This document shows positions 3,202 to 55,817 of a stretch of 64,000 nt of DNA, in pieces. The position numbers and the translations under genes are program-made. Location of the stretch: the sequence record NC_015251.1, one strand, 5' to 3'. The notes beneath the pieces were generated by a model. The model was not told the origin of the DNA. It saw only the letters and a list, made by a program, of their open reading frames with translations, and did not search any database. The number at the start of each line of letters is the position of its first letter. Positions within the stretch are counted from its first letter, which is position 1.

Positions 3202-3303
3202 TTACGAACGTAGTGAGTAACGGCTTTGCCGCCTCGCAAGTTCGGATTTTTCTAATTATAAAGTTTCTATTAATATATTATAGAACTTTATACTTTGATT
3301 ACA
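3202..3303 (+). repeat. Intergenic hairpin/palindrome element, copy 1
   Basis: TTACGAACGTAGTGAGTAACGGC plus ATTTTTCTAATTATAAAGTTTCTATTAATATATTATAGAACTTTATA; a near-identical inverted copy lies at 55713-55817. Confidence 0.9.
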
Positions 3304-3406
3304 TTTGAAACTAACTCATATAAAGCGTTTTAAGAGACTTTACACTTAACCTATACAAAGTTATAGGGTAGGTTATAAAGTCTCTTATACGAGCATACAG
3401 AGTGGT

Positions 3407-3676
3407 CTACTGGACGATTTCGAGATATTCGTTGATCTCATCTTCAAACATTATGAAGCTGTCATTATCATCGAAAGGGAATTCGTCATTTACACCAATC
3501 AAATCACTACCCAGAAGTTCACCTTCGAACACATCGAGGCGAATATGAGAAAACAGATCGATAACTGTCTGTGTATTCTCTGTGTTTTGTGGATAATTAG
3601 AAAAGATTGCTTTTTCTTGTTCAAGAGTGGTAATAAATTGATTGAGAGATTCTTCTGATTTAAAGCGAAATTTCAT
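3407..3676 (-). CDS. Hypothetical protein, K(F/W)KSxE...(Y/F)LEIV paralog family
   Basis: MKFRFKSEES...EINEYLEIVQ. Confidence 0.7.
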   Translation of the reverse strand: MKFRFKSEESLNQFITTLEQEKAIFSNYPQNTENTQTVIDLFSHIRLDVFEGELLGSDLIGVNDEFPFDDNDSFIMFEDEINEYLEIVQ

Positions 3677-3691
3677 TTTTCATTCTCCGAA

Positions 3692-4459
3692 TTATTGAAT
3701 AGTCATATAAACTGTATTTGATGGAAGACTTTTAACAAGCTCCTTCTTGGGGATTCGAATAATATCCAATCGTTGAAGCTTTACAAACTCTCCATCAGAA
3801 AAGAAATCTTCCGATTTTAGAAATCCGTCTTCGATCCATACAGCAGTAAAGATACCAGATTCTGGCATGGTGTCAACCTGTTTTACCTGTTGTTCAAATT
3901 GACTACCAACTTCAACTAGATGATCTTCTACCTCATGAGGTAGGAACAAAATTTGATTTTGGAAACCGATACCATCTGCCTTGAAAATAGATTTATCATT
4001 TTTATAAGCCGCACCTATACCACCTTCACCGATAAAACTTACTTTTTTGCAAATTTGGTCGAGAATGATTTCCAATTCGGTTAGGTATCTTTGATCCCAA
4101 TTACGTTGAAATGCACAGAATACTCGTTCTTTCCACAACACCGGACTGTCTGAATTTTTCCACTTATACCAAGTTTCAACTTTCTCATGGGTTTGTTCAG
4201 TACCAATTTCCACCAAATAATTATTAATATCGTCATCGGTGAATATTAGAAGACCATATACGGATTTATCATTGACCATAGTTACATCGTTAACCCACTT
4301 TTCATGGAAAACGCAAACCATCTCTTTCTCTCCGATAATACTAGCAGCAAATTGAAATTCTTCGCTATTATCACCAAAGATCTTAAATATCTTATTTAAC
4401 CACTCGGATTTTGATTTTGAATCCTTCCATTTATATGTTTTTACTTTACTCATATACAA
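3692..4459 (-). CDS. Hypothetical protein with two tandem paralog-family modules and a C-terminal MPxxGxFxAV module
   Basis: YKWKDS...NYLVEIG, then YKWKNS...DHLVEVG, then MPESGIFTAVW. Confidence 0.7.
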   Translation of the reverse strand: MYMSKVKTYKWKDSKSKSEWLNKIFKIFGDNSEEFQFAASIIGEKEMVCVFHEKWVNDVTMVNDKSVYGLLIFTDDDINNYLVEIGTEQTHEKVETWYKWKNSDSPVLWKERVFCAFQRNWDQRYLTELEIILDQICKKVSFIGEGGIGAAYKNDKSIFKADGIGFQNQILFLPHEVEDHLVEVGSQFEQQVKQVDTMPESGIFTAVWIEDGFLKSEDFFSDGEFVKLQRLDIIRIPKKELVKSLPSNTVYMTIQ

Positions 4460-4582
4460 CCTCTGCTAGTTTTTTGTAAACAAGATTTAGCCCATCGACC
4501 GAATCTTTTAAGTCTTGTGTATGAAACACATCAGAGCATACTATAGCTAAAACTCCAAGTAAAGACCCAATCAAAATATATT

Positions 4583-5158
4583 TCATACATACCCGAGTCG
4601 TTTAGCTTCTTTCTCGTTGATTGCAACAAATCCGTCATCCGTCCGGATCACATAGTCACTTTCCACAACAAGATTACCGTTGAGCAAACACATACCTACC
4701 GCATTTGGACTGCGATATTTCCGGAACCCGTCTACTGCGTCACCTGCAAAGGTTTTAAGTTCGTCAATACCTTCCTGACTATATACAAACTTTACGTATT
4801 TTTTCATATCATTTTCCTCTTTTATCTCAACCTTATCATAGGTTTTCCAAAAAATATCTGGCTTACATGCATAGTATTCCCCATCAACCCCTTTAATAAT
4901 AAAGTCTCCCGGAGTTACTACGTGTTTACCTTCACGAGTATCAATAACACCCATAACCTCCCAAGTCCACATATTACTATCTGAACTACAACCGCTAGTA
5001 CCAAGCAGATTAAAGATCTCCATGTAATCTGTAGGTCTTACCATTGGGTGATCTTTACAATCCCTCGCCCATATAGGCATTCCGTTTGTGTCTGGTGCAT
5101 TCCATTGAATAGCCTCTACAACCACCGGCTTTTTACGATATAGATTATTCAGATTCAC
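4583..5158 (-). CDS. Conserved phage protein (YRKKPVVVEAIQW...PGDFII...CKPDIF family) with a degenerate second copy
   Basis: Motifs in the translation; internal GAGGA-ATG before MKKYVKF. Confidence 0.75.
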   Translation of the reverse strand: MNLNNLYRKKPVVVEAIQWNAPDTNGMPIWARDCKDHPMVRPTDYMEIFNLLGTSGCSSDSNMWTWEVMGVIDTREGKHVVTPGDFIIKGVDGEYYACKPDIFWKTYDKVEIKEENDMKKYVKFVYSQEGIDELKTFAGDAVDGFRKYRSPNAVGMCLLNGNLVVESDYVIRTDDGFVAINEKEAKRLGYV

Positions 5159-6517
5159 AGTTGAATCTCCATGATACTAATAAAATTCCAAGTCCATAAC
5201 CCATCGATTTCATCTTTTCTACAACCAGACATATCAATAACGTATTTTTCTACGATTTCTGTTATAGCTTTCCGATCAACAATGTGTTCATCATGGTCAA
5301 CAACTAACACTTGCTCATTGTTGTTCCCACCAAAAGGACCACAAATATCATACTCACACCAAATTTTTATGTAACTTTTCATTTGTTTTTAAACCTCTGC
5401 TCTATTTGATTAATAACCATTTCATATCCAGAATATGGGGTAACATATGCTACTCCCCTTTCGGACCCATGTAAAGTCATTTTAACTGCGTCATTATGAC
5501 CTACCATAAACTTATATTCCACACGAAGAACACCCTTTTCAAATACGGTTGATTCTACCTTAATAGGGCCAAGGTGCTCTTTTTGGAACTGCTTTAGGGT
5601 TTGTACCAAAGTAATTCGTTGTGAGTCTGTGATAGATTCAACGGCCTTATAGAACTGGTTTTCTTGAAACTGTCGGATCTCATGTTTTACCATATCTATA
5701 ATTTTATCAACGCCGTCAGTTCTAACATAGTCAAAACGATAATTCATACACACCTCACATATTTAAAAGTTACCATTGGGGTAAACATTCTATATTCGTT
5801 GGGGACCATACACCAACATACTACTTCATAACCCATACTTTGGGCAGCGAGATCTACCTCATAAATCCAATCTTCTGCGAATGAAGTATCAATAACTCGA
5901 TTATCATACTTACTCAAAATCGGAAATTGTATAGACAAATCGTTATGAGATTTAACAACGAATTTACCTTTCCACGAACTCATGATATCACCCATATTCC
6001 TGATTTGATGTTTTTATAAAGGCCCAAATTAGTAACCATCATAGTTTTCCATTTACTACCCATGCAGTAGTTGATAACCAGACCGCGCGAGTTATGGACA
6101 ATGTACCAACCCATTTATATTTTCCAGTATTACCAGATGATACACCGTTTATAATGCATTTTACAATAACAAATAAAACGGAAATATTCATTATACCCCT
6201 CTCCAACATTGGAACAATCATAACATGGAGCATATCCATGTAAGTTTGACGATAATCGTCTTGATGGATTTCTTTAATCACCTCATATATATCCCGACCA
6301 TTGAGTGACCAGCTAATAACTTCCGCATTATCTATTTCACGAAACGGATTACCGTTCAGCTTAATGATAATGAAGTTTGAACTTTTTGGAAGATCAATAA
6401 GCCATTCATTTCGGCCTGCTAGGGATTTACCATGGGTTGACAAAACTTTACGAACATCTTCATTGATAAATTGGATTCTCATACACATCTCCTTGATTCA
6501 GATTCCATAATACCAGA

Positions 6518-6556
6518 AACAAAAATGGGATCAAGCATTATTTGCCCGATCCCATT
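6518..6556 (-). terminator. Rho-independent terminator closing the 6560-8038 cluster
   Basis: AATGGGATCGGGCA-AATAA-TGCTTGATCCCATT followed by TTTG. Confidence 0.75.
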
Positions 6557-6559
6557 AAA

Positions 6560-6892
6560 TTATTTCTTCAACATACCATTCAGCTTATCAAAAGCCGCAT
6601 TGAAGTTCTTTTGTGTGTCTTCTTTTGAACGACTAAACTTAACCTGACCGAATGTTTCGATAGGGCTAATGTTTGTCTTTGTCAAGTCAACATTTTCTTT
6701 AACCCAACGTTTCCATTCGTGTTGTTGAACCTCGTAATACTTTTTAGCATCACGGATCCCACCGGTTGTCATACGACCTTGAACCGCACTCAACATAGAA
6801 ATGTATTGGTTAACAATACGATTATAGTCTTTTGAGGTTTTCAAAACGTGTGCCTCATCAAGACGCTCGAAAAATTTACTGTTATCTAACAT
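6560..6892 (-). CDS. Hypothetical protein, candidate internal head protein
   Basis: N-terminus MLDNSKFFERLDE resembles T4-type capsid-targeting/gp21-cleavage leaders; basic body. Confidence 0.55.
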   Translation of the reverse strand: MLDNSKFFERLDEAHVLKTSKDYNRIVNQYISMLSAVQGRMTTGGIRDAKKYYEVQQHEWKRWVKENVDLTKTNISPIETFGQVKFSRSKEDTQKNFNAAFDKLNGMLKK

Positions 6893-6893
6893 A

Positions 6894-7166
6894 TTACCCC
6901 CGAGCTTTCATAACTGCATCGACTACATCTTTGTTATTTGACATAGCAAACATAACAGCAGCTTTACCGATTGCGGTCTTTTTGGTCAGTTGTTCACCTG
7001 ACCATTTAGCCTTGGCATCAAAAGAACCAAATTTAAGTTCGTGTTTTTCGATCCAAGTATTGAAAAATTCTGCCAGTGAATCTTTAAATTGTTTGTTAAT
7101 CAGATCTTTAGATTCACTCAGAAGAGATACATCCAGTTTTTCGTTCAACTCATTGAATTTTTTCAT
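6894..7166 (-). CDS. Hypothetical protein, candidate internal head protein
   Basis: MKKFNELNEKLDVSLLSE leader with LxE sites. Confidence 0.55.
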   Translation of the reverse strand: MKKFNELNEKLDVSLLSESKDLINKQFKDSLAEFFNTWIEKHELKFGSFDAKAKWSGEQLTKKTAIGKAAVMFAMSNNKDVVDAVMKARG

Positions 7167-7178
7167 TTTATTTTTCCT

Positions 7179-8038
7179 TTAGTATCCGTAATTTTTGGCA
7201 GCAACTTCATCATAAACTTCAAACGTTTTGAACTTACCGGTTTCTTCATCGCCAAAAGAGTATACACCTTCTTTCAGGTTAATGGAAAGCTTTTTATACT
7301 CATCCCCGATTTTTATTTTAGCAAATTCACTATCACCAATCATAACTGGATACTCAACACCTTCCAATGTAAGCATAGTTCCCAACTGGGCAATAGATCC
7401 GGTTTGACGATCTGACGGACTTAGATTTTTAAAATTTACTTGTCCGGAAGTCGCTTTTGAACTAAACGCATCCATAGCCTCGGTTAATTTCTGGTCATAG
7501 TCAAACAATTGAACACCATCTACGTCATGACCTAAAATTGATTTTTGCTTCGTCCATCATTCCTTTAAAATCCGGATGGATCATAAGAGATTCAAGCAAA
7601 GACTCCATCATGGCGCTTTTCTGACCAGCAGCCAGTTGTTTATGAGAGATCTTACCGCCAGTACCTTTAGGGAACACGGTTACTATGTTAATTTCTCGTC
7701 CTTTAACACTAGCAACTACCGAACGGTTTTCAGATTGGGAGTGGAACATGTAGGTTCCGCCTTTAATCTTATTCGTTTCAGTATGCTTAACAATCTTACG
7801 GGCAAACTCTTTCCACTCTTCCGCCGACTTATCACCCGCTCGTTGATGTGCCCGAGCTTGTGCATGGATAGACGCTTGAACTTTAAATGGCCCTACCCGC
7901 ATAGTGACGGGTAATTTTGATTGTTTACTAAGATTAAATTCTTGGTCTTTGGTTAGTTCTACTTTTCGATTTCGACTTTCTGCCCGAACTTTCCTCGATT
8001 GATATGAGTCGAGAAAAGAAATGTTTGTTTTCTAACAT
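7179..8038 (-). CDS. Probable single frameshift-split gene (ORFs 8038, 7525-7902, 7179-7508) with a RelE/DUF4258-like segment
   Basis: Strong SD plus MLENKHFFSRL at 8038; overlapping open frames at the junctions; HAQARAHQR...INIVTVFP motif. Confidence 0.45.
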
Positions 8039-8068
8039 ATTATTTTCCTTAAGGTGAGTCTTACCCTT

Positions 8069-8076
8069 TATTTAGG
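8069..8076 (-). promoter_or_regulatory. Candidate T4-type late promoter (CCTAAATA)
   Basis: Variant of TATAAATA about 30 nt upstream of the 8038 start; no sigma70 -35 seen. Confidence 0.45.
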
Positions 8077-8459
8077 AAGATAAAAATAAGACAGTATGAT
8101 AGATAAAATTAGAATTATGTAAATTCCCATTTTGGTTTTCATATCATGGACGGACTCCGCGAGGATCCCAACGCCAAACCCATATAAAAATAATCCAATA
8201 TTCATAAAATACCTCATTTACGAAATTGCAAAGCAGTAAAGGGAAGAAATACCGGCTATTACATAACCAGTGGTGAATCCTTTTGATATGCTGCGCGGGT
8301 ACCTCGTACCGATTTAACGAAACAACCGCCAGCAACAAAAACAAGTGCGATTACCATTATTCTTCCCTCTCATTAGTTGATATGAGTAGTATACACTAAC
8401 GATTTATCATTTCAACATAATTTTTGAAAAGTTATAGATGAAATGCTGTATGTCTCGGA

Positions 8460-8852
8460 TCACAATCCAAACATTCTCATTACAATAAACATGATAATAT
8501 TATAATGAACTAAGTGATGAGCCATTTGGTCTAGTCCAAGATGATACCAGAACTTAGCATCTTTTGGTGTATGGTTTCTACTTAATTCTACTTTAATTTT
8601 ATCGATAACGAAATGAGAAATAAAATCAAAAAGTGTTAGTGCAACAACAACCCAGAAGCTCATACCCATGATGACCGCAACAAACATTGTCATCGCTGCA
8701 TGAACCCCACAATGAGCAGCAAGAGGAAGTTCCCAACCATTCTCTTTGAATTTCCCGAGCATATACTTACCTTGCAGTAAGTAATCAGCTAAGTAGTGTT
8801 TGACCTGATAAAAAACTAGAAGTCCAAATATAGTTAGTAAAATTTCGGTCAT
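8460..8852 (-). CDS. DUF3307-like membrane protein
   Basis: KHYLADYLLQ, HCGVHA, HFVID and DQMAHH histidine motifs in hydrophobic helices. Confidence 0.8.
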   Translation of the reverse strand: MTEILLTIFGLLVFYQVKHYLADYLLQGKYMLGKFKENGWELPLAAHCGVHAAMTMFVAVIMGMSFWVVVALTLFDFISHFVIDKIKVELSRNHTPKDAKFWYHLGLDQMAHHLVHYNIIMFIVMRMFGL

Positions 8853-9156
8853 TTATTCTTCCTCTTCATACTCATCATCTTCGTCATTATTTCGGATATA
8901 TGACATGGGATTATAACCTGACAGTGAATATCCCATCAAACTAATCAGCCATTGAATTTTTTCTTGGTCATCTGTGACGATCTCAAGATCTTCACGATCT
9001 AGGGGTTCCCTCTACTTCGGAATGTTTACCAAGGATTTCACCAAAATATACATCAGACCCAATATATTTTTCAACTACTTCCGAGTCTTCTACAAAAAGA
9101 CCTTCTACACTTCCACCACGACCGGCGTCCCAATAAAAACGATACAATTTCAACAT
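8853..9156 (-). pseudogene. Frameshifted GKHSEV-family hypothetical gene (missing from the ORF track)
   Basis: Stitching frames gives MLKLYRFYWDAGRGGSVEGLFVE...YFGEILGKHSEVEG...EEEE*; probably sequencing indels. Confidence 0.6.
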
Positions 9157-9199
9157 TTTATATTACCCCATATTTTTAGATTTAATTTTACCACAACAT

Positions 9200-10360: not shown

Positions 10361-10373
10361 AAAATACCTTTTA

Positions 10374-12229: not shown

Positions 12230-12945
12230 TTGTATTTCTCCGGAACAAACCCAACCACAAGAAGTAGTATGAAAGTGAAAAATATGGATATAATTAGGAA
12301 ATCTCCATTTCCAGTAACCAATGTACAACCAACTAATATTGTATGAAACACAACAAGAAAACACAAGAACAAAATTTGTTTTATTTGATTGGACTCCAAG
12401 AACCCAAGAACAATCGAATAAATTGTAAGAATAACAACAATAACAGTGAAAAATATAACCACAGTCAATCCTTATTGAAATAATCATCGGAATAATCGGC
12501 TGTAAGTGGATCGTGTTCACTTGCATCATACAATGAAACTGAAACTTTAGTTGTGATACTACTACCACCATCTCTATGATCTACACCAACACAAAGGCTA
12601 ATATTTTCTTTGATGTAACGAATCAAAAAATCTTGATTTTGTTCTACCCAATCTTCATAAGTCATAATCAAACCTCAACTTTAACAATATGATAACCATA
12701 ACCAAGATATCCCAATTCCTTTTGCATAGAAACCATTCGACCTTGGGCGGCGAAATAAGATGCAAGATTGTGCTGGTTCATAGTCTCAACAAATACAGCA
12801 ACCACATAATCGTTTGAGTCTGGACCGTTTTCAATAACCGCATGAGCTTGGCGGAATTTAATTCCCTTCTGGAAGCGGGCTTTGGCTTCTTGCAGTTTGG
12901 CCTTGATTGCTTCATTCATCATATTTTCCATAATTATCTCCTTTT

Positions 12946-12989
12946 GTTTCGACAAAGAGAGTATCCCACAAACGGGGATACTGTGTCAA
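12946..12989 (-). promoter_or_regulatory. Early promoter with -10 hairpin and +1 GTCGAAAC
   Basis: TTGACA-18-GATACT-6-GTCGAAAC; AGTATCCC...GGGATACT palindrome. Confidence 0.8.
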
Positions 12990-14040: not shown

Positions 14041-15546
14041 ACACGAACCCCAGTCAAAACAACAATTTCATAATCATCCAGAGGGAAATCTACATCTGGA
14101 TCTGAATAGTGTGTGTTTATTCCCCGAACAATTACCCCACGTTCCAGAATATGCTTTATGTCAAGCCAGTTTGGTTCACACCAAACATTATCAGCGAATT
14201 CAGATCTCACCAACGAGTAATCCTGTTCGCCATCAATGTAACTGGTGAAAACTTCCCAACCAATAAATTTTCCGGTGTCTTTATGTGCAAGTGCAAACAT
14301 GGTTATTTCCTCTTACATTACTTCGGGTTGAGTGTGGACCGCACGGTATTTCTGTTGGAAAGACCGAACAGAAACAATCATGGGATTTTCAGAATTTTCA
14401 ATAAAATCTTTGGTCATTAGGGTTCCCAAAGACCCCTGAGACATAACAACACCTTTTCGGTAGTGTTCACCTACACACCAACCCTTGTTATTCAGTACAT
14501 AGTCCATAGCATCTTGAAAAGACATATCAAATTTGTTCATTACCATTTCCTCGGTTTTTTGATTCCAAACGCAATACGATTCTCGATAGCATTGTAATAC
14601 GTTTCTTTAGCTTTGTCTTTATAATAATCCAATCTAAGCCTAAGCTCGTATTGTTCATCTCGATTAAACACGTCTGTGAATAATACATCATCCCCATCGA
14701 ATTGGTCAAGTAAAACTGCACCATCTAAGATTTTAAGCTTTATGGTGTCGGGAATATACTCAAACGTTATAACGAAAAACCAACCCGGAATTTTGATATT
14801 ACGTCTAACGCTACGCGTTGCAGTACCAACATCGAGGGACCCGATAATTTTTTGAGTTAGTGGGCGAATAGCGGGCTTGTGCTTTTTAAAAAACATTTTC
14901 ACTCTCCGTAATTATTAGCGGCCCAAATTTTCCAATCAAAACCACAATTACATTTACCTTGTGAGTCTTGATATTCTGCGTTTTCACCACACACCGGACA
15001 GCATGGGACCGACACTGTGAACTTAGCACCAATGGGCCACGAATCGGTATGGATTACCGCATATTCACTCTCATATGCTTCCTCTTGCCCAGCAGCAGTA
15101 GCCCACACATAAGGTTTGTTATTCTCTACGTTCAGGCGAATTTCACCATGTCCAACTTGTTCATATTTCATTTTTCAATCTCTTCAAAAATTGTTACATC
15201 GTGAGTTGTTTGGATCGTCTTGTTATCCATAATATAATCGGTGATCCCAGATTCCGCTTCTTCACGACTACCAGCACGATATTCCTTGATCATGGTTCGA
15301 GTTTCGCCGGTTTTTGCGTCAGTAAAAACTACTTTAAACAAAAAATCTTTCATGGGTATTCCTTATTTGAGGGGAAACCATACATTCTAGGATATGAGAT
15401 ATCAAAATTACAGGCCATGCATAAAATCCACGGAAGGGGTTTTCTTCGTCTAAGTGTAGTGCGACTGCCCAGATACCAATAACAATGTAAAACACTACAA
15501 ACGCACACACTTCAAAGATTACATGACTCATTTCGATATCTCTTTT

Positions 15547-15589
15547 GTTTCAACAGGGATAGTATCTCATACCCCCGATATTAGATCAA
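15547..15589 (-). promoter_or_regulatory. Early promoter with +1 GTTGAAAC
   Basis: TTGATC-17-GATACT-6-GTTGAAAC. Confidence 0.75.
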
Positions 15590-17623: not shown

Positions 17624-18942
17624 TCATTTGTATAGATGGTCAAGTATTACCTTAACCATATCAGACTTGTCAAGCTTTATCAGCTTGTTGTAAAGTCGTT
17701 TTCCTACTTCGATTTCAGGAGTGTATCCTTTCTGACGTATGGTGTCAATCAATTCTGGAAGAATTTTAATAATATCTATCCAATTTTGAAGAATTTCGGT
17801 TGTTCCATCAGCAAACTCTTCCGGTGTGATTGAAGGATGGTTCATATCCTGTCTGTATGGCTTTGTGAGACGTTCTAGCTCTTGTGGGATAGAACCATCT
17901 AGGAACTTGAATACAATTAGCTGGTGAGGCTTGTACGATGTTTTACGAGCTTGTTGTTTGATGCGTTGTTCTAGGAAGTTGTGATACCAATCTTGAAAAA
18001 CTCGTTTGTATCTTTATCGTTATTGATCCAGTTGGTAACGTAAATGTGTCCCGGCTTGGATTTGTTATAACCGTAGGTTGTGCATGATGGACATCGTCTA
18101 CCACCATACACGAAGTCATTATAAGAAGTTGTTTGTCTTTCATGAAGATAGCAAATGTATTCAAACTTCGAGTATGTGTTTTTATAACCATCTGGAAAGC
18201 CAAGGTATTCATAACCAATTTCTTCACAAAGTTCTTTTGTGATTGTTTCTGCTTCTGAATTTCTTTGTTTATCAGCCATCGATTTTATTCCACAATCAAA
18301 ACAACCACGACCGCCGTTAATAAGGTCATTATAAGAGGGAGTATAATGACCATGTTCAGGACAGTTGATTGTCACTTTAGATTTTTGATTTTTATATCCT
18401 TCAGGAAAACCGATATATTCGTGCCCTTTATACTTCTCTCCTTTTAGAACAGACATAACTTTTCCAAAAGGGTCTTGTTCTTTTTGTTTTTCTTTAATTG
18501 ATTTTATTCCACAATCAGCACAACCACAACCACCATTAACAATTTTGTGATAAGAGAGAGTATAATGTCCATGTTCAGGACAGTTGATTGTCACTTTAGA
18601 ATTGCTGTTCTTATATCCTTCAGGAAAACCGATATATTCATGCCCAACATGTTTTTCACTTGTAGATAAAACCTTTTTTACAAGAATCTCTATTTGAAAA
18701 GGTTTCCACTTAGGATTGAATGCACAACCACAAGGGCTACAACCTTGGTTCAAATTACCTTTTGCACTCTCAAACAAATCAGGAAATAACTCTGTATCCA
18801 GAGAACAAATAGAACAAGTCAACTTATATTTCTTCTTATTCCCTTTCAACCCATTATCACTAACAACAGTCAGAACCCCACCTTTCGGAGTTGGAAAAGT
18901 TTGTCCAATAAAATCGTCTTTAACTTCACAAGTACCGCACAC
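17624..18942 (-). mobile_element. Free-standing homing-endonuclease-like gene: Zn-ribbon repeats plus C-terminal GIY-YIG/T5orf172-like domain, 1-nt frameshift at ~17975
   Basis: Repeated CPEHG...GCxDC modules; GHIYV...FKIGIT; adding one A gives KIGITNFLEQRIKQQ and reads through ORF 17624-17845. Confidence 0.75.
18279..18644. repeat. Intragenic direct repeat (~145 bp, period ~219 bp)
   Basis: GATTTTATTCCACAATCA...CATGTTCAGGACAGTTGATTGTCACTTTAGA...TTATATCCTTCAGGAAAACCGATATATTC at ~18279-18425 and ~18498-18644. Confidence 0.9.
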
Positions 18943-40735: not shown

Positions 40736-41327
40736 ATTTATTTCCTTTCAACTTTAACAAAACTGGAACTGGAAGGGTCATTCCAAAAATATCCACCACT
40801 CGGTTTGATATAAGATCCCCGCTTAGAGTTCTTATTCTTGACATATTGCATATGAATTGCATTAAAGTATCTCAGATTTGTAGAAATCTTTTTCGCGGCT
40901 TTTACCATATTGTAATTAAAATAGAAACACCCAATAGAATCAAATGTTACACACATACCACCAGTTTCATCACGACAATAAGAATACTTAAGATATGGGT
41001 TCTTAACAATACCCATATGTTCAGAATCTGAAATAATCGTGCTAATAAACCCACACATTAGCTTTAAAGAGAAAAATCGAACTCGACCAAAACCATCAAT
41101 TAGGGTAAATCCCCGCGCCCCAGTATCTGTACCGTTTGCGGGACGAAATCCCAAAGCTTTAGCAGTTTCAACCAACACCGTAACATTTCTAATCATATAA
41201 TTATCCTTTCCGACATTTGACGTTTTTCATTTTGAACTCAGACATGATCACATCATAAAGACGGGCCTTTTTACCATACTTAGCAATCAGCATTTCTAAT
41301 GACATTTTCATGGTAGTTCCTTAGTTC

Positions 41328-41371
41328 GTTTCGACAAAGAGAGTATCCCACGAATAGGATACTCTCGTCAA
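41328..41371 (-). promoter_or_regulatory. Early promoter/terminator module with +1 GTCGAAAC
   Basis: TTGACG-18-GATACT-6-GTCGAAAC; perfect 10-bp stem GAGAGTATCC/GGATACTCTC. Confidence 0.8.
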
Positions 41372-45387: not shown

Positions 45388-45615
45388 TTAGAGAACCAGA
45401 GTTTTGGATTTCTTGGTGATTACGGTAGTGGTTACAGAACCACCACGGCGACCGGTGCGGGAAAGAGTGAGTGTTTCTTTCTTAGTAGGCTGTACCTCAA
45501 CAGTCCGAGCCCAACGCTTTTCGGAAGTAGTACCGTTATCAGTCATTTTGCCAAAAGACGCAGCACGGGCATTTGAACGAGTAGAGAAGAAAACTTGTAC
45601 GTTAGTCATGGTCAT
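45388..45615 (-). CDS. Small basic conserved phage protein
   Basis: FSTRSNAR...FGK..DNG...KRW; has its own promoter and SD. Confidence 0.7.
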   Translation of the reverse strand: MTMTNVQVFFSTRSNARAASFGKMTDNGTTSEKRWARTVEVQPTKKETLTLSRTGRRGGSVTTTVITKKSKTLVL

Positions 45616-45637
45616 TTCCTTTTTAAAATGGGGTTTC

Positions 45638-45680
45638 GTTTCAACAAAGCTAGTATCTCACACTAGGTTATTCGAGTCAA
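45638..45680 (-). promoter_or_regulatory. Early promoter with +1 GTTGAAAC
   Basis: TTGACT-17-GATACT-6-GTTGAAAC. Confidence 0.8.
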
Positions 45681-46989
45681 CTACTTTTCTTAAATTTTCC
45701 CACGTTCCATCATAGATGTTAGATTGAATTCTATGTCAGAAGACCCACCTTTACCAACCAACAATCTACATTCATTAACGAATCTACGCAGACTATTATT
45801 AAACTCTTTGGTATCGAATTCAAACCGACTCATCATAGAGTAGTCTTCTTTTCGGGATAATACAGTAACTGCAAATAATTTATTTCCAAGTTTGTAAATC
45901 CAAAGGGCGTTTTTTTCACCAATCTTAGGATCGTGTTTAGAAATTCTCTTACCGTCTCGGTCAAATATATCCACATTATCAATTCTATCATTAAATGATA
46001 AAATACTAAAATGTAGTATATATTTTCCCACAAATTCAAGATCTGTATCTGAAGTGTTCTCTAATTCTCTAAAGAAACATGCAACTTGTGTATAATCATG
46101 AAAACAAGCAACTGGGGGAATAATATCCGACGATTGATATTTAGTACCCGATTTCTCCCAATAATCGCGTCTTGGGGTCCCTGTAACATATTTCTGTAAG
46201 CATATTGAGATCTCTTGATATCCATCACCCAGCTCACTGAACATTTTTGCATTTTCATTTTTCATTGTATACCCCCAATTCGTATCGGCATTCTTTTATG
46301 AAATCTTGTAGGTCTTTAGAAATACCATTATTGTCGTATCCATTCATAATGTCAACTACATTTTTATCAAACCTACCTTTACCACCATCTACAAGCCTTA
46401 AGCAAAACGTATTGCTGGTAGACCCATATGAAAACACATATCCAATATAATTATAAAAAACATTAGGAGGATTTACAATGTCGATAGATTGGATCTTAAC
46501 TTCACCATCATTATAAGATAAATCTAGGTAAGAAAGATTAATCAAGCCAATAAATGTAATTTTAGCATTTTTTGTTTTGGATATTTCCCTTGATAGAAAT
46601 TTAAGATCTTCCATATTCTTAACTGCAACAACTGGCGGAATGTCAGGATTTGCTTTAAATCCCCCACGGGTTGGGTTGTGCGTCCACCATGTATAAGGAG
46701 TTTCTTCTATACCGGAAGCAATAATACTTTTTGATAGGCCGTTGAGAGAGCTACTAAACTTAGAAATATATTCTGCATTTTTGTTTTTCACAATCTTTTC
46801 CTCTTTATATACTTCTTTTTTAGAAATAATATCATTCGAAACCATACTACATACACGGTCTGAAATAATAGGATTTGAAAACATACATACACGGTCTGAT
46901 GTTCCCTCTTGATCATCAACGATATATTGCATCGTTCTAGGATCATAATATGTAAAATTACGAACTTTCATCAACATAACATTCTCCAT

Positions 46990-47622: not shown

Positions 47623-47651
47623 TATTCATTTTCCTTTTGGATTTGTGTTTT

Positions 47652-47694
47652 GTTTCAACAGGATTAGTATCTCAAAACTAGTTCTTGTCGTCAA
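47652..47694 (-). promoter_or_regulatory. Early promoter with +1 GTTGAAAC
   Basis: TTGACG-17-GATACT-6-GTTGAAAC. Confidence 0.8.
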
Positions 47695-47984
47695 CTACTT
47701 TTTCAATTCTTTTTCTTGGGCCAGTATTTTACAATGGTTGCAAATTGTTCGTAATCCAACTCAATATGTTTTATATCAAACACAAACAAATTGTTCATAG
47801 CTTCTAGTAAGTGCCTAGCTTGGGTAACTCCCCGAATCTCATTGGATCGCTTTTCAATGGATTCACTATTCACAAAATTTAGATGGGCCTTTATAAACTG
47901 GTCCCGAGTAACAATAATTTTCATATTAATTTCCTCAATTAACTAAGGATTATTGTACACGATAAAATCATGAAGTCAACAAAT

Positions 47985-48009: not shown

Positions 48010-48013
48010 GTAA

Positions 48014-48256: not shown

Positions 48257-48272
48257 ATTTCCTTATTTAAAA

Positions 48273-48917: not shown

Positions 48918-49271
48918 TCATTTTTCACCAACACTTAGCATATGTGTTTCAACACCATGGAAAATATCACCATGGCATAGATCCGCAAGTGTAACCAATT
49001 TCTCAAGTTTAAAGGTACGGAATTCACCCTTATCTACATCAAAGAATCGGACAACATCCGGGTTTTCTTTACGTGGTTTTGAATCGGGTTTAGCCTCTTC
49101 AGGGCGACCAATGACAGATTCGACAAGAACCGGATCCAGAGTTGCTTTACCAGATCTCTGTGTTCCATCAACTTTCTCAAAAGTCAAATCAACAACCCCA
49201 GATTTAAGGATCTCAATTACGCTGGATTTGAATACTTCACGACCTTCTACGGTCAGATCATTATAATTCAT
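48918..49271 (-). CDS. SH3/WYL-like beta-barrel protein conserved next to gene 31 in T4-like phages
   Basis: GVVDLTFEKVDGTQRSGKATLD...FFDVDKGEFRTFK. Confidence 0.7.
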   Translation of the reverse strand: MNYNDLTVEGREVFKSSVIEILKSGVVDLTFEKVDGTQRSGKATLDPVLVESVIGRPEEAKPDSKPRKENPDVVRFFDVDKGEFRTFKLEKLVTLADLCHGDIFHGVETHMLSVGEK

Positions 49272-49284
49272 ACTATGTTATCTC

Positions 49285-49824
49285 TCACAATACTGTTAAA
49301 AATTTAGGAAGACGAGGAACCCGAACATGATAATTATTGAAGTCAATCACAGACTCATATTGTTCAACCTCAATACCCTGATCCTCTAAGGTCTTTTCCC
49401 AACCTTCGGCGGATTTACTATAAAGAGTATGATATATAACCTTTTTGATCCCAGCAGCAGCCATATGTTTGGCACAATTAGAACACGGACTCAAAGATGT
49501 TACCAATGTAGCACCATCAACCGATTGACCGGAACGGGCAGCATATAGCAGAGCATTCATTTCACTATGGATTACATGAGTGTTAGCCCATGAGCTATAT
49601 TCATCTTCATACTTTGGATACAATCTAACACCATCTACGGCTCTTTCAGCCCAACCCATATTGATAGCGTGTTCATCCGGATTAATCCCCCCCGCACGGG
49701 TCCCATTATACCCTGTAGAAATCACCCGACCATTTTTAACAATTACGGTTCCTACCTTATGACTCGGGCATTTACTTTCGTTACTAACAGCAAGCGCCAT
49801 TGTAACTAGTGTTTTAATCTTCAT
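49285..49824 (-). CDS. cd: dCMP deaminase
   Basis: VGTVI, STGYNG, HSEMNAL and SPCSNC. Confidence 0.95.
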   Translation of the reverse strand: MKIKTLVTMALAVSNESKCPSHKVGTVIVKNGRVISTGYNGTRAGGINPDEHAINMGWAERAVDGVRLYPKYEDEYSSWANTHVIHSEMNALLYAARSGQSVDGATLVTSLSPCSNCAKHMAAAGIKKVIYHTLYSKSAEGWEKTLEDQGIEVEQYESVIDFNNYHVRVPRLPKFLTVL

Positions 49825-50377
49825 TTAGTTTATCGCCTTTTCTTTCCCATTTTTATATTGTTGACCAACACAATAGCAAACCTCACCAAATTTATCTATA
49901 TATACCGTATGGATCAGAACTGGCATACCAACCGGATCCACCACAGCAATTTCATAAATTGTATCAGATTTCTTAATATGACCAACACGGAACGGGTTAG
50001 GAACCGTTTCATCAAATCGGTTTACAAGTTCCATTACTTTCTGTTCAAATTCCAATACGTCCATTACACAACACCTGAATATTTTATATTAGATACTTTT
50101 CGCACCGTGATGGTACTTAGGATCTGATTTAGTTCTTTAATCTCTTGTTGAGTCAACTTCTCATAAATGTCTGGGCGGAACCAACGAGATTTAACCAATA
50201 TCCCCCGCTTAATACGATCACGAACGTATGGAACAAATACGGTAGACTCATACGTTTTTGCATATTCGAGTTTATTAAAAAACAAACCTTTTCCGTGATG
50301 GAATATGACGTGAGTTTTTCCACCCACATCAGAATAAGTTATTGCATACATTTCATACCTCTTTTGTTTCAATCATA

Positions 50378-51178
50378 TCATACTTCCTTTTTCTTTGTAT
50401 ACCTTTTTGTAAGGATTTTCAGGGTGATATGAGAAACCATCGGAGTAAGCATAAATCCGAACAAGAACCAAACCCAAGTCCTACGACCAAGCTGTTTAGC
50501 TTTAACGCTTACATAGATAACCCACATTAAAATCAAACTAGTAATTATCATACCAATCCAATCAATAGACGAGGATGATGGCGGTTCTGGATCTGTAATT
50601 ACTGTACTCGATTCCTTATTGCAACTATCTGGGATTTTATATATCCGTTGCATAGTGTCAATAAGACCGGATGTATTTAATGTTACGTCTCGAATATCAC
50701 CGGCAGTTGTTAAATAATTTATGTGAATACTATCGGAATTAACCAAATTGTAATATTCACCGGTACACGTATTTAGCTCCTGATATGAAAATAGTTTCAT
50801 AGTTACCGTAGAATCAGAAACTCGTATTGATTCCGCAATCCCATTAATATTTCGGTTTTGTGGCTCGAAATATTTAACGGTTTCACCCACTTGAACCACA
50901 ATAGGGGTCTTTGGATGAAAGTTATCAATCAAGGATGACATATTCATATAGAATGCCTGATGACGTTGCATGGCAGCAATATGAAGAATATACGGGATCG
51001 ATTGATCTTCTGATTCTGGGTGCGGAAAATATCCAACCAAACTCATAGTTTTCTGAGTAGCAGCATCAGTTATAATATGCTCTCTCCAAACACGATCTGA
51101 ATCTGGAACCATGGCAGAGACTGATAATGATACTAAAACAAATAAAGAAACTATAAATTTTTTCATAAATCTCTCCAC
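50378..51178 (-). CDS. Exported protein with a C-terminal membrane hairpin
   Basis: Signal peptide MKKFIVSLFVLVSLSVSA; C-terminal TM plus GRRTWVWFLFGFMLTP. Confidence 0.75.
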   Translation of the reverse strand: MERFMKKFIVSLFVLVSLSVSAMVPDSDRVWREHIITDAATQKTMSLVGYFPHPESEDQSIPYILHIAAMQRHQAFYMNMSSLIDNFHPKTPIVVQVGETVKYFEPQNRNINGIAESIRVSDSTVTMKLFSYQELNTCTGEYYNLVNSDSIHINYLTTAGDIRDVTLNTSGLIDTMQRIYKIPDSCNKESSTVITDPEPPSSSSIDWIGMIITSLILMWVIYVSVKAKQLGRRTWVWFLFGFMLTPMVSHITLKILTKRYTKKKEV

Positions 51179-51386
51179 AACCGATCATTAATCTCATTTT
51201 CTAGCCGGATCTCAAGCTCCCTAATTCTAGCTCTAAGATCCTGAATTGTAGATTCTGGGTCTTCCATGTCCATCATGTGGCGGATATTACCCGCACAATG
51301 TACTTGAATAACTCCTTTCTTAATAGCCCACGCAATTTCTTCTTTAGTAAGAAGAGACATATTATCTTGAAGATGATCGTATTGCA

Positions 51387-51764
51387 TCACAGATTTCCTA
51401 CAGTAAATCGAATCTCTTGAACGATTTCGGTTAAGTTCTTAACTTCCATACTAAGCTCTTTTACTGCTTGAAGCAAGACCTCATTTGTATCCGTTTTTGA
51501 AACTACATCACAATCTTCATATGGCATTACGAACATATTCATATGAGTTTCATCATTAAAAGCGTAAACTTCGTCCATAAGGAACTCATTACGTAATTCA
51601 AGTGACGGTTTCAATAAAGTATAATCTTGACCATCCCATATCATCTCGAAAGGTTCGCATGGATCCATAAACCAAGAGCATCGATATTGCCAATTACATT
51701 TTTTGCGATAGTCATCAAACGCTTCTACGGATTTAAAAACAAACAGTTTTGTATTCATATACAT
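51387..51764 (-). CDS. Hypothetical protein, FKSxE paralog module plus coiled coil
   Basis: KLFVFKSVEAF...; C-terminal heptads. Confidence 0.6.
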   Translation of the reverse strand: MYMNTKLFVFKSVEAFDDYRKKCNWQYRCSWFMDPCEPFEMIWDGQDYTLLKPSLELRNEFLMDEVYAFNDETHMNMFVMPYEDCDVVSKTDTNEVLLQAVKELSMEVKNLTEIVQEIRFTVGNL

Positions 51765-51781
51765 TCCTTAAAAGGGGATTT

Positions 51782-52693
51782 CTAAAAATCCCCGCTTTGA
51801 ACCTGCCAGCACTCGATACCAAGACCGCGCCACATTTTGACAACCTGATCGCGATCATCCACAACAAAACACACATTATAATTTGGTGCGATATCACGCC
51901 AGAAGATTTCTTCTTTGATGATAGAAACGGGACGCTGGGCCCCTTCATCGCGTTTGGAATGTGCATCGTTAGGAATGCCATGGGTCTTGTACCAATCGGC
52001 TGTATCACTCATACAGACACCATCACGACCGGATACGTTGATGATCTGATATCCTTGAGATTTGAGAAGGTTAGCCAACATAACAACATTCTCTCGGGGA
52101 GTATCTTCACCAACTTTATCCCAATCGAACGGTTTACGCTCGTTCTTTTCGGCAAGAGTACCGTCAGTATCAAAGATAACTGCCATTGGAAGACTAGGAT
52201 CCGCAGTATAAAGCTTTTTATCTACGTATTCCACCACACGATCCGACTTACCACGATTCGGAAATTGCTCATCGAATTGGGATACCATACGAACAAGAAC
52301 ATCGTCATTCACAGCCCAACCGCCACGGTCCTTACTACGGCGTTTCAGTTCTTCCATGGGGACAGGGAACCAGACAAAGACAACCTCATAACCCATTTGT
52401 TCCAAACTATCTACCAGAGCGGTACGAAGGTGTACGTTAAGGTTAGTATCGGAGATAACAACGTTTTTCTCTGCATTGTAGGCAGCAAGAATTTTACTCT
52501 TGTTAACCTCAGTAACGAGATTTTCGCGGTCTTTACCGAAATTATAACCTTTCCAACTCTTGATCTGGAACAGGCTACGGCGTGTATCATCGCGATTGAT
52601 ATTGATAGTCTTGCCTTGAGAGGTCTTAACCATAGCCTCGGCAAAGGTACTTTTACCGCTGGAACTTGCACCGATAGTAATGTATGCAAACAT
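51782..52693 (-). CDS. pseT: Polynucleotide 5'-kinase/3'-phosphatase
   Basis: GASSSGKST, NRDD, SDTNL, FDTDGT, SGR and DDRDQV. Confidence 0.96.
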   Translation of the reverse strand: MFAYITIGASSSGKSTFAEAMVKTSQGKTININRDDTRRSLFQIKSWKGYNFGKDRENLVTEVNKSKILAAYNAEKNVVISDTNLNVHLRTALVDSLEQMGYEVVFVWFPVPMEELKRRSKDRGGWAVNDDVLVRMVSQFDEQFPNRGKSDRVVEYVDKKLYTADPSLPMAVIFDTDGTLAEKNERKPFDWDKVGEDTPRENVVMLANLLKSQGYQIINVSGRDGVCMSDTADWYKTHGIPNDAHSKRDEGAQRPVSIIKEEIFWRDIAPNYNVCFVVDDRDQVVKMWRGLGIECWQVQSGDF

Positions 52694-52704
52694 AATTATA
52701 TTCC

Positions 52705-53052
52705 TTATTTGTCCATATCACACATATTAGCGTTTACTTTTTGAGCCCATTTACTGGACTTCATATCGAGCTGATATTGTAATTCTTCTTGTACATATTT
52801 GTCAATCTCTTCGTCAGTCAATTTACCGTAAGATTGATCTTTTACGGTAAGACGAAGCAGGTCAACAATACAGTTAATGTAATCGGCACATTCACCAAAC
52901 ACAGTTTCTTTACAACGATACGGTTGAATAATAGTGGTGGCGATTTCACCGTTTTCTTCTGCCATCTTACCCATAACGAAAAGGGTATTCCGTTCGGGAG
53001 AAAACGGGGCGGTTCTTGAAATATACAATTGACGACTAAGATCGAGTTTCAT
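52705..53052 (-). CDS. MazG-like nucleotide pyrophosphohydrolase
   Basis: KMAEENGEIA...GECADYI..IVD. Confidence 0.75.
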   Translation of the reverse strand: MKLDLSRQLYISRTAPFSPERNTLFVMGKMAEENGEIATTIIQPYRCKETVFGECADYINCIVDLLRLTVKDQSYGKLTDEEIDKYVQEELQYQLDMKSSKWAQKVNANMCDMDK

Positions 53053-53523
53053 TTATTTTCCTTTATGCTTTAATATTCGAATTTTTGAATTAGATGTATA
53101 CAATTCGTTAGGTTTAAGAATAATACCTTCCCGCAGATTTGGGTTGTGCTTAATAAGATATCGGATCCGTTCGTTAATTGCAAGCAATTCCCAGTAACGA
53201 AGATTCCTGTTCTGTGCGACAAAATCTTTAAGCATTTGGTTCGCACCGAGTATATCATTCCTATACTCATCTGCTACACTTTTACAGAAGTTTTCAGTTT
53301 CTTCGTTCTTGATAATGTTCATCACTTCACCTCAACTTGATACAAGTGGATTTCACCCTCAAAGATAACCTTACACTTAGTAGTGTTCCAGATACCGTCT
53401 TGATACTTATCCGCAATTGTAAAGTCATACCCTTCTGGGGTATAGATAACTGCGCGGGGCTTCAGGTCTGCGATAGTAGCTTGACGGAACTGAGTGGTTT
53501 TCTTTTTCATGTTTATCTCTCCT

Positions 53524-53566
53524 GTTTCGATAGGGATATAGTCTCATATCCCTACATCTAGGTCAA
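53524..53566 (-). promoter_or_regulatory. Early promoter with -10 hairpin and +1 ATCGAAAC
   Basis: TTGACC-17-GACTAT-6-ATCGAAAC; 9-bp stem TAGGGATAT/ATATCCCTA. Confidence 0.8.
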
Positions 53567-53876
53567 CAAGTTTCTTAAACAATATCCAATTTAACTACTT
53601 CATACTCGGAAAGAATGGCTTTACCTTTTCCGGTCTTGTAGTAACTTGAAAGTTCTGGGTCTTCTGGTGAAGAATTGTACCAAGGAACATCTTGTTCACC
53701 AGAAAGAACACGTTCCAGATAACCTACTCGGTTTGTGATGAATGGGACAAAACATTCAGGTTCAAAACTCGCCTGAACATCATTCTGAAACTCGGATTCA
53801 TCTCCAACACCAGTAGTGGAGATCCCGATAAACAAACCTTTCTTATCTTTATGACGGAGTGCATAAAACATAATCA

Positions 53877-54134
53877 TTACCTCAGTTGAGAATCTTTACT
53901 TCCTCTACGATTGTACATACTCGGTATCTTCTTGTCAAAGAGATTTTGACATTTAATACAGTATCTTGTTTCTATGGCCTGTCGTCTTGCTATTGGGATT
54001 GGTTCATCACACTCATCACAAAACTCAGGACTTACACCACGATACATGTTAGCTCGCGCAAAGTCAACTGCATTTGCAACAGTAGTTGCGATTGTTTCTT
54101 GAACACCATCAACGGAACCAAACCCAACGGCCAT
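53877..54134 (-). CDS. TraR/DksA C4 zinc-finger protein
   Basis: DGVQETI (acidic tip); CDECDEPIPIARRQA...YCIKCQ. Confidence 0.9.
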   Translation of the reverse strand: MAVGFGSVDGVQETIATTVANAVDFARANMYRGVSPEFCDECDEPIPIARRQAIETRYCIKCQNLFDKKIPSMYNRRGSKDSQLR

Positions 54135-55056
54135 TTTTAAACCTTTATATTTGGATACAAACTGGAATCCATTATACCAGACTCATAACCTAGAAGATAG
54201 TTGTATGCGTCAGTAGCGTTTAGAAAAACCCCGATGATAACATCTTTTCGGTTTTTGAGTTTAATGCGATCATTAAAAAGAATTACTTCGATTGCGTATT
54301 TTTCAGCTTTGGCTTTCATACCCAAGTAGTTATGAATTTCTTGCATCTTTACTTTACCTCTTCCAGAACGTTATTGAGAAAATCGCCATAGTTATCGCCA
54401 AACAATTCGATCCCTTCGTCACTCATGGCAAGCACATATTCCCCTGTGTCTGAGATAGAATCGCCCCAACTAAGTTTATCAAACCATACATAATCCCCGT
54501 AATAATTCTTATCCGTACACTTGATGATATTACCGAGACAGTTACCATGCTCTTTAGCAACACCACATAGGGAAACTATTTTATAAGACTTACCAATTTC
54601 AACTTTCATAATTATCTCCTATTAAATCACAATTTTCAATACTGTTCAATAATAAATTTAGGAACCATCACACGATAAATTTCAAAATCTTCAAGGGTAA
54701 CATCTCGGATAACATTACCGAATGTACTCATTGGGTCCTGAGAAAGATAAGGATATCCACGGGAGATCATACCCCGAAGAAGCCCGATAGTAGTTGGGTC
54801 TTCTTCATAAATGTATCCGAGCGCACATTCATTCACGATCACATAACGAACTTTACGAATACCGTTATCATCATACCATTTAGCCATTTTATTAATCCTC
54901 ATCAAAATCACCACCAAGAACTTTCGCGGCCAGTACACACGAACCATACCACATCATACCACCAATAACCAGTATGGAAATAGTAATAACTTCGTTCATG
55001 TGTTTCTCCAAAAAGAAAAGGTCTTGTCCCAATCGACAAGACCTATTATATACACA

Positions 55057-55584
55057 TTACTGACGATAGCAACCACAAGATCGTAAAAACTTAATGTTTT
55101 TTGCTACTCGTTCGTAATACTCAATACCTGCACTACTGTTAGGGCTATATCCAGCATTGTAACTTTTAACAACCATTTTCCAGTCACCATTACGGACTTC
55201 TTTCCAATACTCAAGCTCCATCAGAGCATAGTTAGCAGAGGTTTCCATACTCGCGATAAGCTCGGATCTCAACTTTCGTTGGTGTTTCCAACCCATCTTA
55301 GAACCGGTTAGTTGTTCAACCCGCTTAACCGTATACTTTAGATTGTTCTGGAACACTCCATAATCGCCAGTACGGTTATTGATTAAAAATTTACCTGCTT
55401 TACTCTCAGTAAGAGCAATTGCAGCCAGTGTAAGCCCATAACCTGAAGATTCTCCAAGTTCATAAGCTCGCTGAATTGTATAAATCTGATTTTCCGTTAA
55501 TTCACGGTTTTCATACATAACAGCATTTGCCGATATCGACGTTAGAAGTAGGAGAATTCCTACTAATATACTACCACTTTTCAT
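55057..55584 (-). CDS. T4 Vs.1-like SLT lytic transglycosylase with signal peptide
   Basis: AIALTESKAG, GVFQ and SYNAG. Confidence 0.85.
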   Translation of the reverse strand: MKSGSILVGILLLLTSISANAVMYENRELTENQIYTIQRAYELGESSGYGLTLAAIALTESKAGKFLINNRTGDYGVFQNNLKYTVKRVEQLTGSKMGWKHQRKLRSELIASMETSANYALMELEYWKEVRNGDWKMVVKSYNAGYSPNSSAGIEYYERVAKNIKFLRSCGCYRQ

Positions 55585-55712
55585 CTTCGATCCTTTTTAG
55601 TGGAAGGGGTGAATTGTGGGACTTTCTAACACTCATCTAAAAACAAGCAAAGCCCAAAATAGTATTTAGCCATAAAATATTATAGAAGTCAAGAATATTT
55701 TTAGTTTCAAGT

Positions 55713-55817
55713 GCAATCAAATTATAAAGTTCTATAATATATTAATAGAGACTTTATAATTAGAAAAATGTGAGTGAAACGAACAAACGGCTTTGCCGTT
55801 ACTCACTACGTTCGTAA
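55713..55817 (-). repeat. Intergenic hairpin/palindrome element, copy 2 (inverted relative to 3202-3303)
   Basis: The reverse complement shares a 23-bp identical block and a ~55-bp block with about 3 mismatches. Confidence 0.9.

Follow-up and report, generated by a model that had tools for sequence, protein, structure and literature searches.

Evenly spaced, easily melted intergenic cassettes of Aeromonas phage 65 as candidate replication origins

Bacteriophage T4 has at least five replication origins in 169 kb, and these are without a common motif (PMC3016281). The minimal oriF and oriG are about 100 bp long and combine a promoter that has a sigma70 -10 hexamer and no -35 element with an AT-rich unwinding element (PMC3016281). 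Two of the T4 origins are fired by MotA-dependent promoters, and what replaces these in phages with AsiA and no MotA, such as phage 65, Aeh1 and KVP40, is an open question (PMC2988021). Another repeated element of T4-type phages, the PeSL cassette, contains a full sigma70 early promoter (-35 and -10), is co-oriented with the genes and is clustered in hyperplastic regions (PMC2839356, PMC4122927). The DNA analysed here, called the window, is a stretch of 64,000 nucleotides that BLAST placed at bases 171230-235229 of the T4-like Aeromonas phage 65 (Straboviridae, Emmerichvirinae, Ishigurovirus; GU459069/NC_015251, 235,229 bp), making it the final 64 kb of that genome; its open reading frames (ORFs) are on the minus strand almost throughout. 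To our knowledge, the replication origins of T4-type phages other than T4 are essentially unmapped. We describe a composite intergenic cassette, present in the window as copies A and B, which we tentatively read as a replication origin.

A sequence-only reading of the window had noticed an element in two inverted copies 52 kb apart, and had considered that they could be cis-acting sites such as replication origins, recombination or inversion sites, or a non-coding RNA. The sequence and a repeat search bear out the two copies: positions 3202-3224 on the plus strand are exactly the reverse complement of 55795-55817 (common sequence TTACGAACGTAGTGAGTAACGGC), and inverted arms were found at 3246-3314 / 55701-55769 (69 nt, 94% complementary) and at 3202-3231 / 55788-55817 (30 nt, 90% complementary). 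It was also right that both copies sit in non-coding gaps between co-directional genes, here minus-strand ORFs, and that the TTT of the small stem CGGC-TTT-GCCG is on the plus strand in copies A and B alike. A degenerate 23-nt pattern of the right arm matched the window at copies A and B only, with 0.03 matches expected by chance. The premise of a single pair had to be given up, since a search of the whole phage 65 genome found seven copies at six intergenic loci, adjacent loci being about 24-52 kb apart. Their cores are at 35.36 kb (S1, plus strand), 59.31 kb (S2, minus), 102.20/102.31 kb (S3, a head-to-head pair between gp54 and gp26), 136.56 kb (S4, plus), 174.50 kb (S5, which is copy A, plus) and 226.98 kb (S6, which is copy B, minus). 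Lone cassette modules were not found elsewhere in the phage 65 genome.

The cassette is non-coding, has a total length of about 110 bp and is made of three modules: a GC hairpin, an AT-rich quasi-palindrome of about 48 bp and a 19-nt TTGATTnCAnTTGAAACTA box. In copy A the GC hairpin module, CGAAC-GTA-GTGAG-TAA-CGGC-TTT-GCCG-C-CTCGC-AA-GTTCG, is at 3205..3244 on the plus strand, its pairing being fully nested in this copy, with an RNA fold of -17.8 kcal/mol (z -2.7). The quasi-palindrome, TCTAATTATAAAGTTTCTAT-TAATATATT-ATAGAACTTTATACTTTGA, is at 3251..3298 and the 19-nt box, TTGATTACATTTGAAACTA, at 3295..3313 on the plus strand, with two TTGA repeats 10 bp apart. Two -10-like boxes point outward from the quasi-palindrome. 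The left one, TATAAT on the minus strand at 3255..3260, with no -35 and no TG, faces the start of ORF 2809-3192 across the GC hairpin; the right one, TATACT on the plus strand at 3289..3294, was placed by the 27-copy alignment. Copy B has the same layout in the other direction, its GC hairpin module CGAACGTAGTGAG-TAACGGCAAAGCCGTT-TGTTCGTTTCACTCAC being at 55770..55814 on the minus strand (fold -13.8 kcal/mol, z -2.2), its quasi-palindrome at 55717..55764, its left box, TATAAT, on the plus strand at 55755..55760, its right box, TATAAT, on the minus strand at 55721..55726 and directed toward vs.1, and its 19-nt box, TTGATTGCACTTGAAACTA, at 55702..55720 on the minus strand; the left box and the 19-nt box of copy B were assigned from the sequence and the 27-copy alignment.

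Two alignments were used to compare the modules across the family, one of the core region in 27 cassette copies and the other of the GC hairpin module in 14 sequences. The hairpin module has the pattern CGAAC-GWA-GTGAG, apical stem-loop, GTTCG-YTWCR-CTCAC. Its CGAAC:GTTCG helix is 97% paired, and covariation is found in the apical stem only, where three of the four pairs show compensatory double changes (CGGC/GCCG, CCC/GGG, CGCC/GGCG, CGCGC/GCGCG). A pseudoknot in which GTGAG:CTCAC would cross this helix was rejected, the second helix being 81% paired and showing no covariation. At several loci of Aswh_1 and CC2 the module has the opposite orientation to the core, and at S6 the TTT/AAA loop of phage 65 is not that of its avDM6 orthologue; the loop flip between copies A and B is thus one module inversion among several in this family. 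The most invariant part of the cassette is the 19-nt box TTGATTnCAnnTGAAACTA, and in all about 32 columns are invariant in the 27 copies, whereas the adjoining intergenic DNA cannot be aligned.

The constant parts of the quasi-palindrome are TCnAAnTnTA on the left, the inner arms TCTAT and ATAGA, and TATAnTTTGA on the right. Both sides contain an outward TAnnnT hexamer, 28-30 bp apart. Positions 1, 2, 4 and 6 of these hexamers are invariant in the 27 copies and variation is confined to positions 3 and 5: the left box is TATAAT, TACAGT or TACACT, and the right box is TATAAT, TATACT, TATAGT or TATATT, so that only its position 5 varies, through all four bases. Changes in one box are uncompensated in the other, and therefore the two boxes behave, as far as sequence can tell, as putative -10 boxes and unlike a stem. 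Symmetric compensatory changes in the AT palindrome were looked for and gained no formal support (RNAalifold, double changes in 0 of 15 pairs), and its mid-arms are non-complementary in three of the Aswh_1 copies. A sigma70 consensus scan of copies A and B found no -35/-10 pair, no -35 and no TG extension, the -35 position being occupied by TCTATT or CTATAA. A terminator consensus scan scored only the apical stem of copy B, which is weakly terminator-like. Rfam gave no match in the window at the gathering score, and around copies A and B only chance-level matches (E > 0.7). The covariation check proposed with the sequence-only reading therefore gave a divided answer, positive for the apical GC stem and negative for the AT palindrome, and the suggestion of a non-coding RNA was left neither supported nor excluded.

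The cassette is conserved in close relatives, as the sequence-only reading had proposed to check. Phages avDM6 (of the same genus), CC2 (Ceceduovirus) and Aswh_1 have it at loci identical to those of phage 65, in the same circular order and relative orientation. Since these phages were sequenced independently, an assembly duplication, which would have undone the observation, is ruled out. Wider scans with degenerate patterns (IMG/VR, GTDB genomes and metagenomes) returned almost only chance matches, the exceptions being close relatives and one prophage.

Related families were found in two more distant phages. In Aeh1 (Cinqassovirus), self-BLAST identified eight copies at seven loci (22.45, 49.59, 90.01, 120.0/120.2, 148.88, 187.14 and 230.76 kb), made of a GC hairpin including CGAACGTAGTGAG, a 19-nt box, a palindrome whose outward TATTTT boxes are separated by 29 bp, and another GC hairpin. 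The 19-nt box is that of phage 65, but inverted relative to the palindrome core. Three of the Aeh1 loci have a syntenic counterpart in phage 65 (the gp54/gp26 pair, ndd/gp52 and the one upstream of vs.1), and the other four have none. KVP40 has a family of six copies (35.9, 79.25, 129.7, 184.0, 210.0 and 238.25 kb), in which six direct repeats of TTAG with a 9-bp period come after a GC hairpin; GCGAAGCG is present in four of the six flanks, and the loci are mostly non-syntenic with those of the Aeromonas phages. The cassette loci are thus fixed across Emmerichvirinae but differ between phage 65, Aeh1 and KVP40. A comparison of repeat families found no comparable single family in T4, which agrees with the absence of a shared motif among T4 origins (PMC3016281).

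The prophage, a low-GC one in Aeromonas rivipollensis DSM 24593, has a single copy. This lies in a 1.1-kb divergent region between a leftward lysis/terminase/head/tail operon and rightward genes (Rha/ANT, H-NS-like). Inverted repeats of 28 bp, which contain GTTCGCTTCGCTCAC, flank its core, its outward boxes are both TCTATACTT, and there are direct repeats and small palindromes nearby. In the control region (sequence L146, 3260-3315 and 3930-4060) we noted a direct repeat, AATGACACTAT, three times and a palindrome, TTCCGAATAATATTCGA, twice, as well as four copies of a GGTTCGCTWCGCTC motif around the cassette. The prophage terminase is unrelated to gp17 of phage 65, and we found no DNA-binding protein common to the prophage and phage 65, which share only a lysozyme, a homing-endonuclease-like ORF and a piece of tail fibre. 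The homing endonuclease gene beside S1 (genome 34224-35120) is matched by a partial homologue of 31% identity lying 2.7 kb from the prophage cassette (L146 421-882). The cassette was not found in the genomes of 45 other Aeromonas species, and accordingly it belongs to phages and not to their hosts.

The spacing of the loci was evaluated by the minimum gap and by the standard deviation of the gaps, under uniform placement and under a second null that allowed only intergenic gaps of 80 bp or more. With uniform placement the respective P values were 0.009 and 0.0016 for phage 65, about 2e-4 for both in Aeh1, and 0.006 and 0.003 for KVP40. With the intergenic-gap null they were 0.009 and 0.0016, 9e-5 and 1e-4, and 0.0025 and 0.0019, respectively. 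The loci are therefore far more evenly spaced than chance in all three phages, while the other repeat families of these genomes are clustered. We also ranked loci genome-wide by duplex stability, using nearest-neighbour energies in 50-bp windows. The six phage 65 loci rank 2, 3, 5, 6, 8 and 10 among the least stable, the quasi-palindromes of copy B and copy A being second and third. Seven of the eleven least stable loci of Aeh1 are cassette copies, and all six KVP40 copies are within the top 22. This low stability has been kept despite core sequences that differ between the lineages.

From their sequence, we favour reading the cassettes as promoter-plus-unwinding-element replication origins of phage 65 with the logic of T4 oriF and oriG, and would put this at a little short of an even chance. 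It is ranked first because the cassette has the same ingredients as oriF and oriG, occurs at a similar density, is regularly spaced and is extremely meltable. The conserved loci in relatives, the related Aeh1 and KVP40 families, an orientation that is independent of gene direction, the possession of AsiA without MotA, and the single prophage copy in a divergent control region beside direct repeats were also counted for origins. Host sigma70 RNA polymerase, together with the AsiA that phage 65 encodes, would open the AT-rich quasi-palindrome at one of the back-to-back -10 boxes, and a short transcript, or the melted region itself, might then admit the replisome as at T4 oriF and oriG. An accessory protein, from the host or the phage, might bind the 19-nt TTGA-repeat box, the flanking GC hairpin might bound the unwound region or structure a primer RNA, and the six loci would split the 235-kb genome into similar replication domains. 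Each of these functional steps is one that we infer. More generally, the family most likely consists of preferred DNA-unwinding and initiation sites, by a mechanism that we again infer. Of the proposals in the sequence-only reading, a cis-acting site of the replication-origin kind is the best supported, circumstantially so, by the spacing in three lineages, the minimal duplex stability, the -10 boxes without -35 and the T4-like density.

Several observations weigh against origins. Since T4 origins have no common motif (PMC3016281), a single repeated origin cassette would be unprecedented in the T4 group. The even spacing could be due in part to the loss of closely spaced repeats by homologous recombination, and part of the low duplex stability is to be expected of any AT-rich palindrome or promoter; four loci outside the family (genome 22459, 13921, 96755 and 116616) are as unstable as the cassette cores. 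The AT palindrome shows no formal covariation in the 27-copy core, the role of the GC hairpin is left unexplained, and no initiator protein was identified in this analysis.

In the main rival reading the cassette would be purely transcriptional, a pair of back-to-back -35-independent promoters sharing an AT-rich operator and having no part in replication. Transcription one way would then use the GC hairpin as a 5' leader or stabiliser and transcription the other way would use it as a terminator, and the cassettes would form a second promoter/stem-loop class beside the PeSLs. The boxes do vary like real -10 hexamers, and phage 65, having AsiA without MotA, needs -35-independent promoters (PMC2988021); neither the N-terminal nor the C-terminal domain of MotA was found in its genome. 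At four loci (S1, S2, S4 and S5) the hairpin side is toward the 5' end of the next gene, and in copy A the hairpin is directly followed by AAGAGG and the ATG of ORF 2809-3192. In avDM6 and CC2 the right box of copy B leads straight into a ribosome-binding site and the ATG of a 77-aa gene, which phage 65 does not have, and the prophage boxes point into two divergent operons. However, promoters as such do not explain why the spacing is regular in three lineages whose loci mostly differ, and the gene context is mixed. Cassette orientation is independent of the direction of the flanking genes, four of the six loci being oriented against them; S3b and S6 have the 19-nt side toward the next gene, and at five of the seven copies the right arm, on that side, is toward the 3' end of a convergent gene. 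Downstream of the cassette, gp26 and vs.1 each have a CTAAATA late promoter to themselves. Moreover, the 19-nt box of Aeh1 is inverted relative to the boxes, and the KVP40 version has direct repeats in place of -10 boxes. We consider a purely transcriptional role, and the leader or terminator function that it assigns to the hairpin, unlikely. A related suggestion is that the cassettes are small-RNA genes which start at the right-hand box, have a common 5' end (GCACUUGAAACUA) and end at a neighbouring terminator or hairpin. In line with this, a strong terminator is found 10-20 nt past the right arm of S1 in phage 65, avDM6, CC2 and Aswh_1, and hairpins are found past the right arms of S2 and S5. 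But the right arm of S4 runs antisense into a coding region with no terminator, the downstream sequences are unrelated between loci and Rfam gave no match, and so we find small-RNA genes very improbable.

An architectural role would resemble the BIME/RIP layout, with GC palindromes flanking an AT-rich site for IHF or topoisomerase and thereby setting topological domains. In Aeh1 and the prophage the AT core has a GC hairpin on either side, and a domain-organising role suits the regular spacing. The reverse complement of the Aeh1 box, AATCAATRAGTTA, fits what we take to be the IHF consensus, WATCAANNNNTTR, a match used as a lead only. The box of phage 65 is one base off this presumed consensus, several such consensus sequences were compared, which makes the IHF match weak evidence, and the absence from 45 other Aeromonas species genomes also speaks against this role, which we regard as improbable. 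What we presume to be the OmpR, DnaA and sigmaS/extended -10 consensus sequences were likewise compared with the 19-nt box as leads, and are unused as evidence. The cassette might also be a selfish or neutral MITE- or PeSL-like repeat with no function of its own, spread and homogenised by the very active recombination of the phage. GC modules are identical among four copies of CC2 and among four of Aswh_1 but differ between the genomes, modules are flipped, extra copies exist at S3 (the pair) and at Aswh_1 S1, the prophage copy has its 28-bp terminal inverted repeats, and indels adjoin several of the loci. However, the loci keep their places across genera, the prophage copy shows no target-site duplication, the invariant columns stand among intergenic DNA that cannot be aligned, and spacing and meltability have been kept in three lineages in spite of a changed core sequence, all of which makes a selfish repeat decidedly improbable. 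That the 52-kb segment between copies A and B undergoes programmed inversion, as their mutually inverted orientation suggested, is largely refuted and scarcely credible. No inversion of this segment was found in phage 65, avDM6, CC2 or Aswh_1, which agree in the order and orientation of all six loci, the copies number seven and are of mixed orientation rather than forming one pair, and no serine (resolvase/invertase) or tyrosine recombinase domains were found in phage 65. The recombination or inversion sites of the sequence-only reading are therefore unsupported.

Cassettes are found among late and core genes, beside gp35, gp24/inh and gp54/gp26, and the flanking genes were given no informative function by PHROG and Pfam searches. 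Looked-for tRNAs were not found. At copy B, phage 65 has a different 60-bp stretch (window 55640-55700) with a TTGACT promoter-like sequence and a CTAAATA late-promoter-like site before vs.1, and the presence or absence of the 77-aa gene amounts to an indel exactly at the boundary of the copy. Adjoining copy A, between it and the stop codon of ORF 3407-3676, is a long site-specific hairpin of 58 nt at 3331..3388 (-26.7 kcal/mol, z -5.6). Its structure is kept in CC2 and Aswh_1 with unrelated sequence, its arms in phage 65 repeat the half-site TATAAAGTCTCT, and it is not followed by a T-tract on either strand. ORF 3407-3676 itself (minus strand, 89 aa) has weak PHROG similarity (E 1e-4) to the T4 goF mRNA metabolism modulator. 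A 39-aa ORF beside S2 (genome 59419-59538, plus strand) matches the first 36 of 191 positions of a DprA-like PHROG and is probably a gene fragment. Elsewhere in the window, a 163-nt direct repeat (18264-18426 / 18483-18645; 84% identity, spacing 219 nt) lies within the minus-strand ORF 17971-18942.

Phage 65 also has early promoters on the minus strand with TTGAC-N17-GATACT in a stem-loop, followed by a TTTGTYGAAAC tract. In the window these cassettes are at 12943-12972, 15531-15573, 41325-41354, 45612-45688, 47626-47702 and 53508-53577, and about 17 good ones are present in the genome between 140 and 219 kb. They are of the PeSL type (PMC2839356, PMC4122927) and a class apart from the seven-copy cassette. 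A resemblance of TTGAAAC to the early-promoter leaders was set aside, being due to the U-tract of the PeSL terminators and having a different offset.

The cassette family is without description in reviews of the T4 relatives, the Aeh1 genome paper and the PeSL papers, a set of sources that excludes the KVP40 genome paper (PMC180978). Somewhat less firmly than for phage 65 itself, we think it possible that the MotA-less giant T4-type phages (the phage 65 group, Aeh1 and KVP40) would, judging from these sequences, use networks of six to eight regularly spaced composite cassettes as origins. It is just as tentatively that we name the common parts of the cassette in the three groups, a GAGCGAAGCG-type motif and a GC hairpin, the AT core being lineage-specific and extremely meltable. 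If so, the T4 superfamily would gain its first example of origins that all carry a single recognisable sequence, with selection acting on the spacing itself. In practical terms, the six to eight evenly spaced and maximally meltable sites in three lineages are origin candidates defined by sequence, and the cassette is a feature for genome annotators to mark. Should the cassettes be only promoters or architectural sites, the regular spacing would still need explaining.

Compared with described systems, the cassette resembles PeSLs in being a repeated composite intergenic unit that joins a stem-loop to a promoter-like sequence and lies beside indels between related phages. However, where PeSLs have an early promoter with -35 and -10, the cassette has no -35, and where they are co-oriented with genes and clustered, it is of mixed orientation, evenly spaced and also found among late and core genes. 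The T4 oriE iterons and the iteron-type origins of plasmids and phages are called to mind by the KVP40 version, whose six direct repeats stand beside a hairpin. Two TTGA repeats at a distance of 9-10 bp remain in the Aeromonas versions, that of phage 65 differing from iterons in having two repeats and a palindrome. BIMEs or RIPs, in which enterobacterial REP palindromes flank an IHF site, belong to the host and number tens to hundreds of copies. Like them, the cassette is intergenic and multicopy and places one or more GC-rich imperfect palindromes beside an AT-rich core with a motif like the presumed IHF consensus; unlike them, it is not in Aeromonas chromosomes beyond the one prophage, and the IHF match of phage 65 is imperfect.

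Another close likeness is to T4 oriF (uvsY) and oriG (34), as in all of these about 100 bp of non-coding DNA contains a sigma70-type -10 with no usable -35 and an AT-rich, easily unwound stretch. At the sequence level both of these ingredients were found in the phage 65 cassette, the unwinding element from predicted stability. Like T4 origins, the cassettes are dispersed, several per genome, at a similar density of roughly one per 35-40 kb (33-40 kb for the cassette taken by itself). In T4, however, oriF and oriG depend on a MotA box at -30, and on motA, and share no sequence, whereas phage 65 has no MotA domain and its putative origin is one repeated unit with two back-to-back boxes, a GC hairpin and a 19-nt box.

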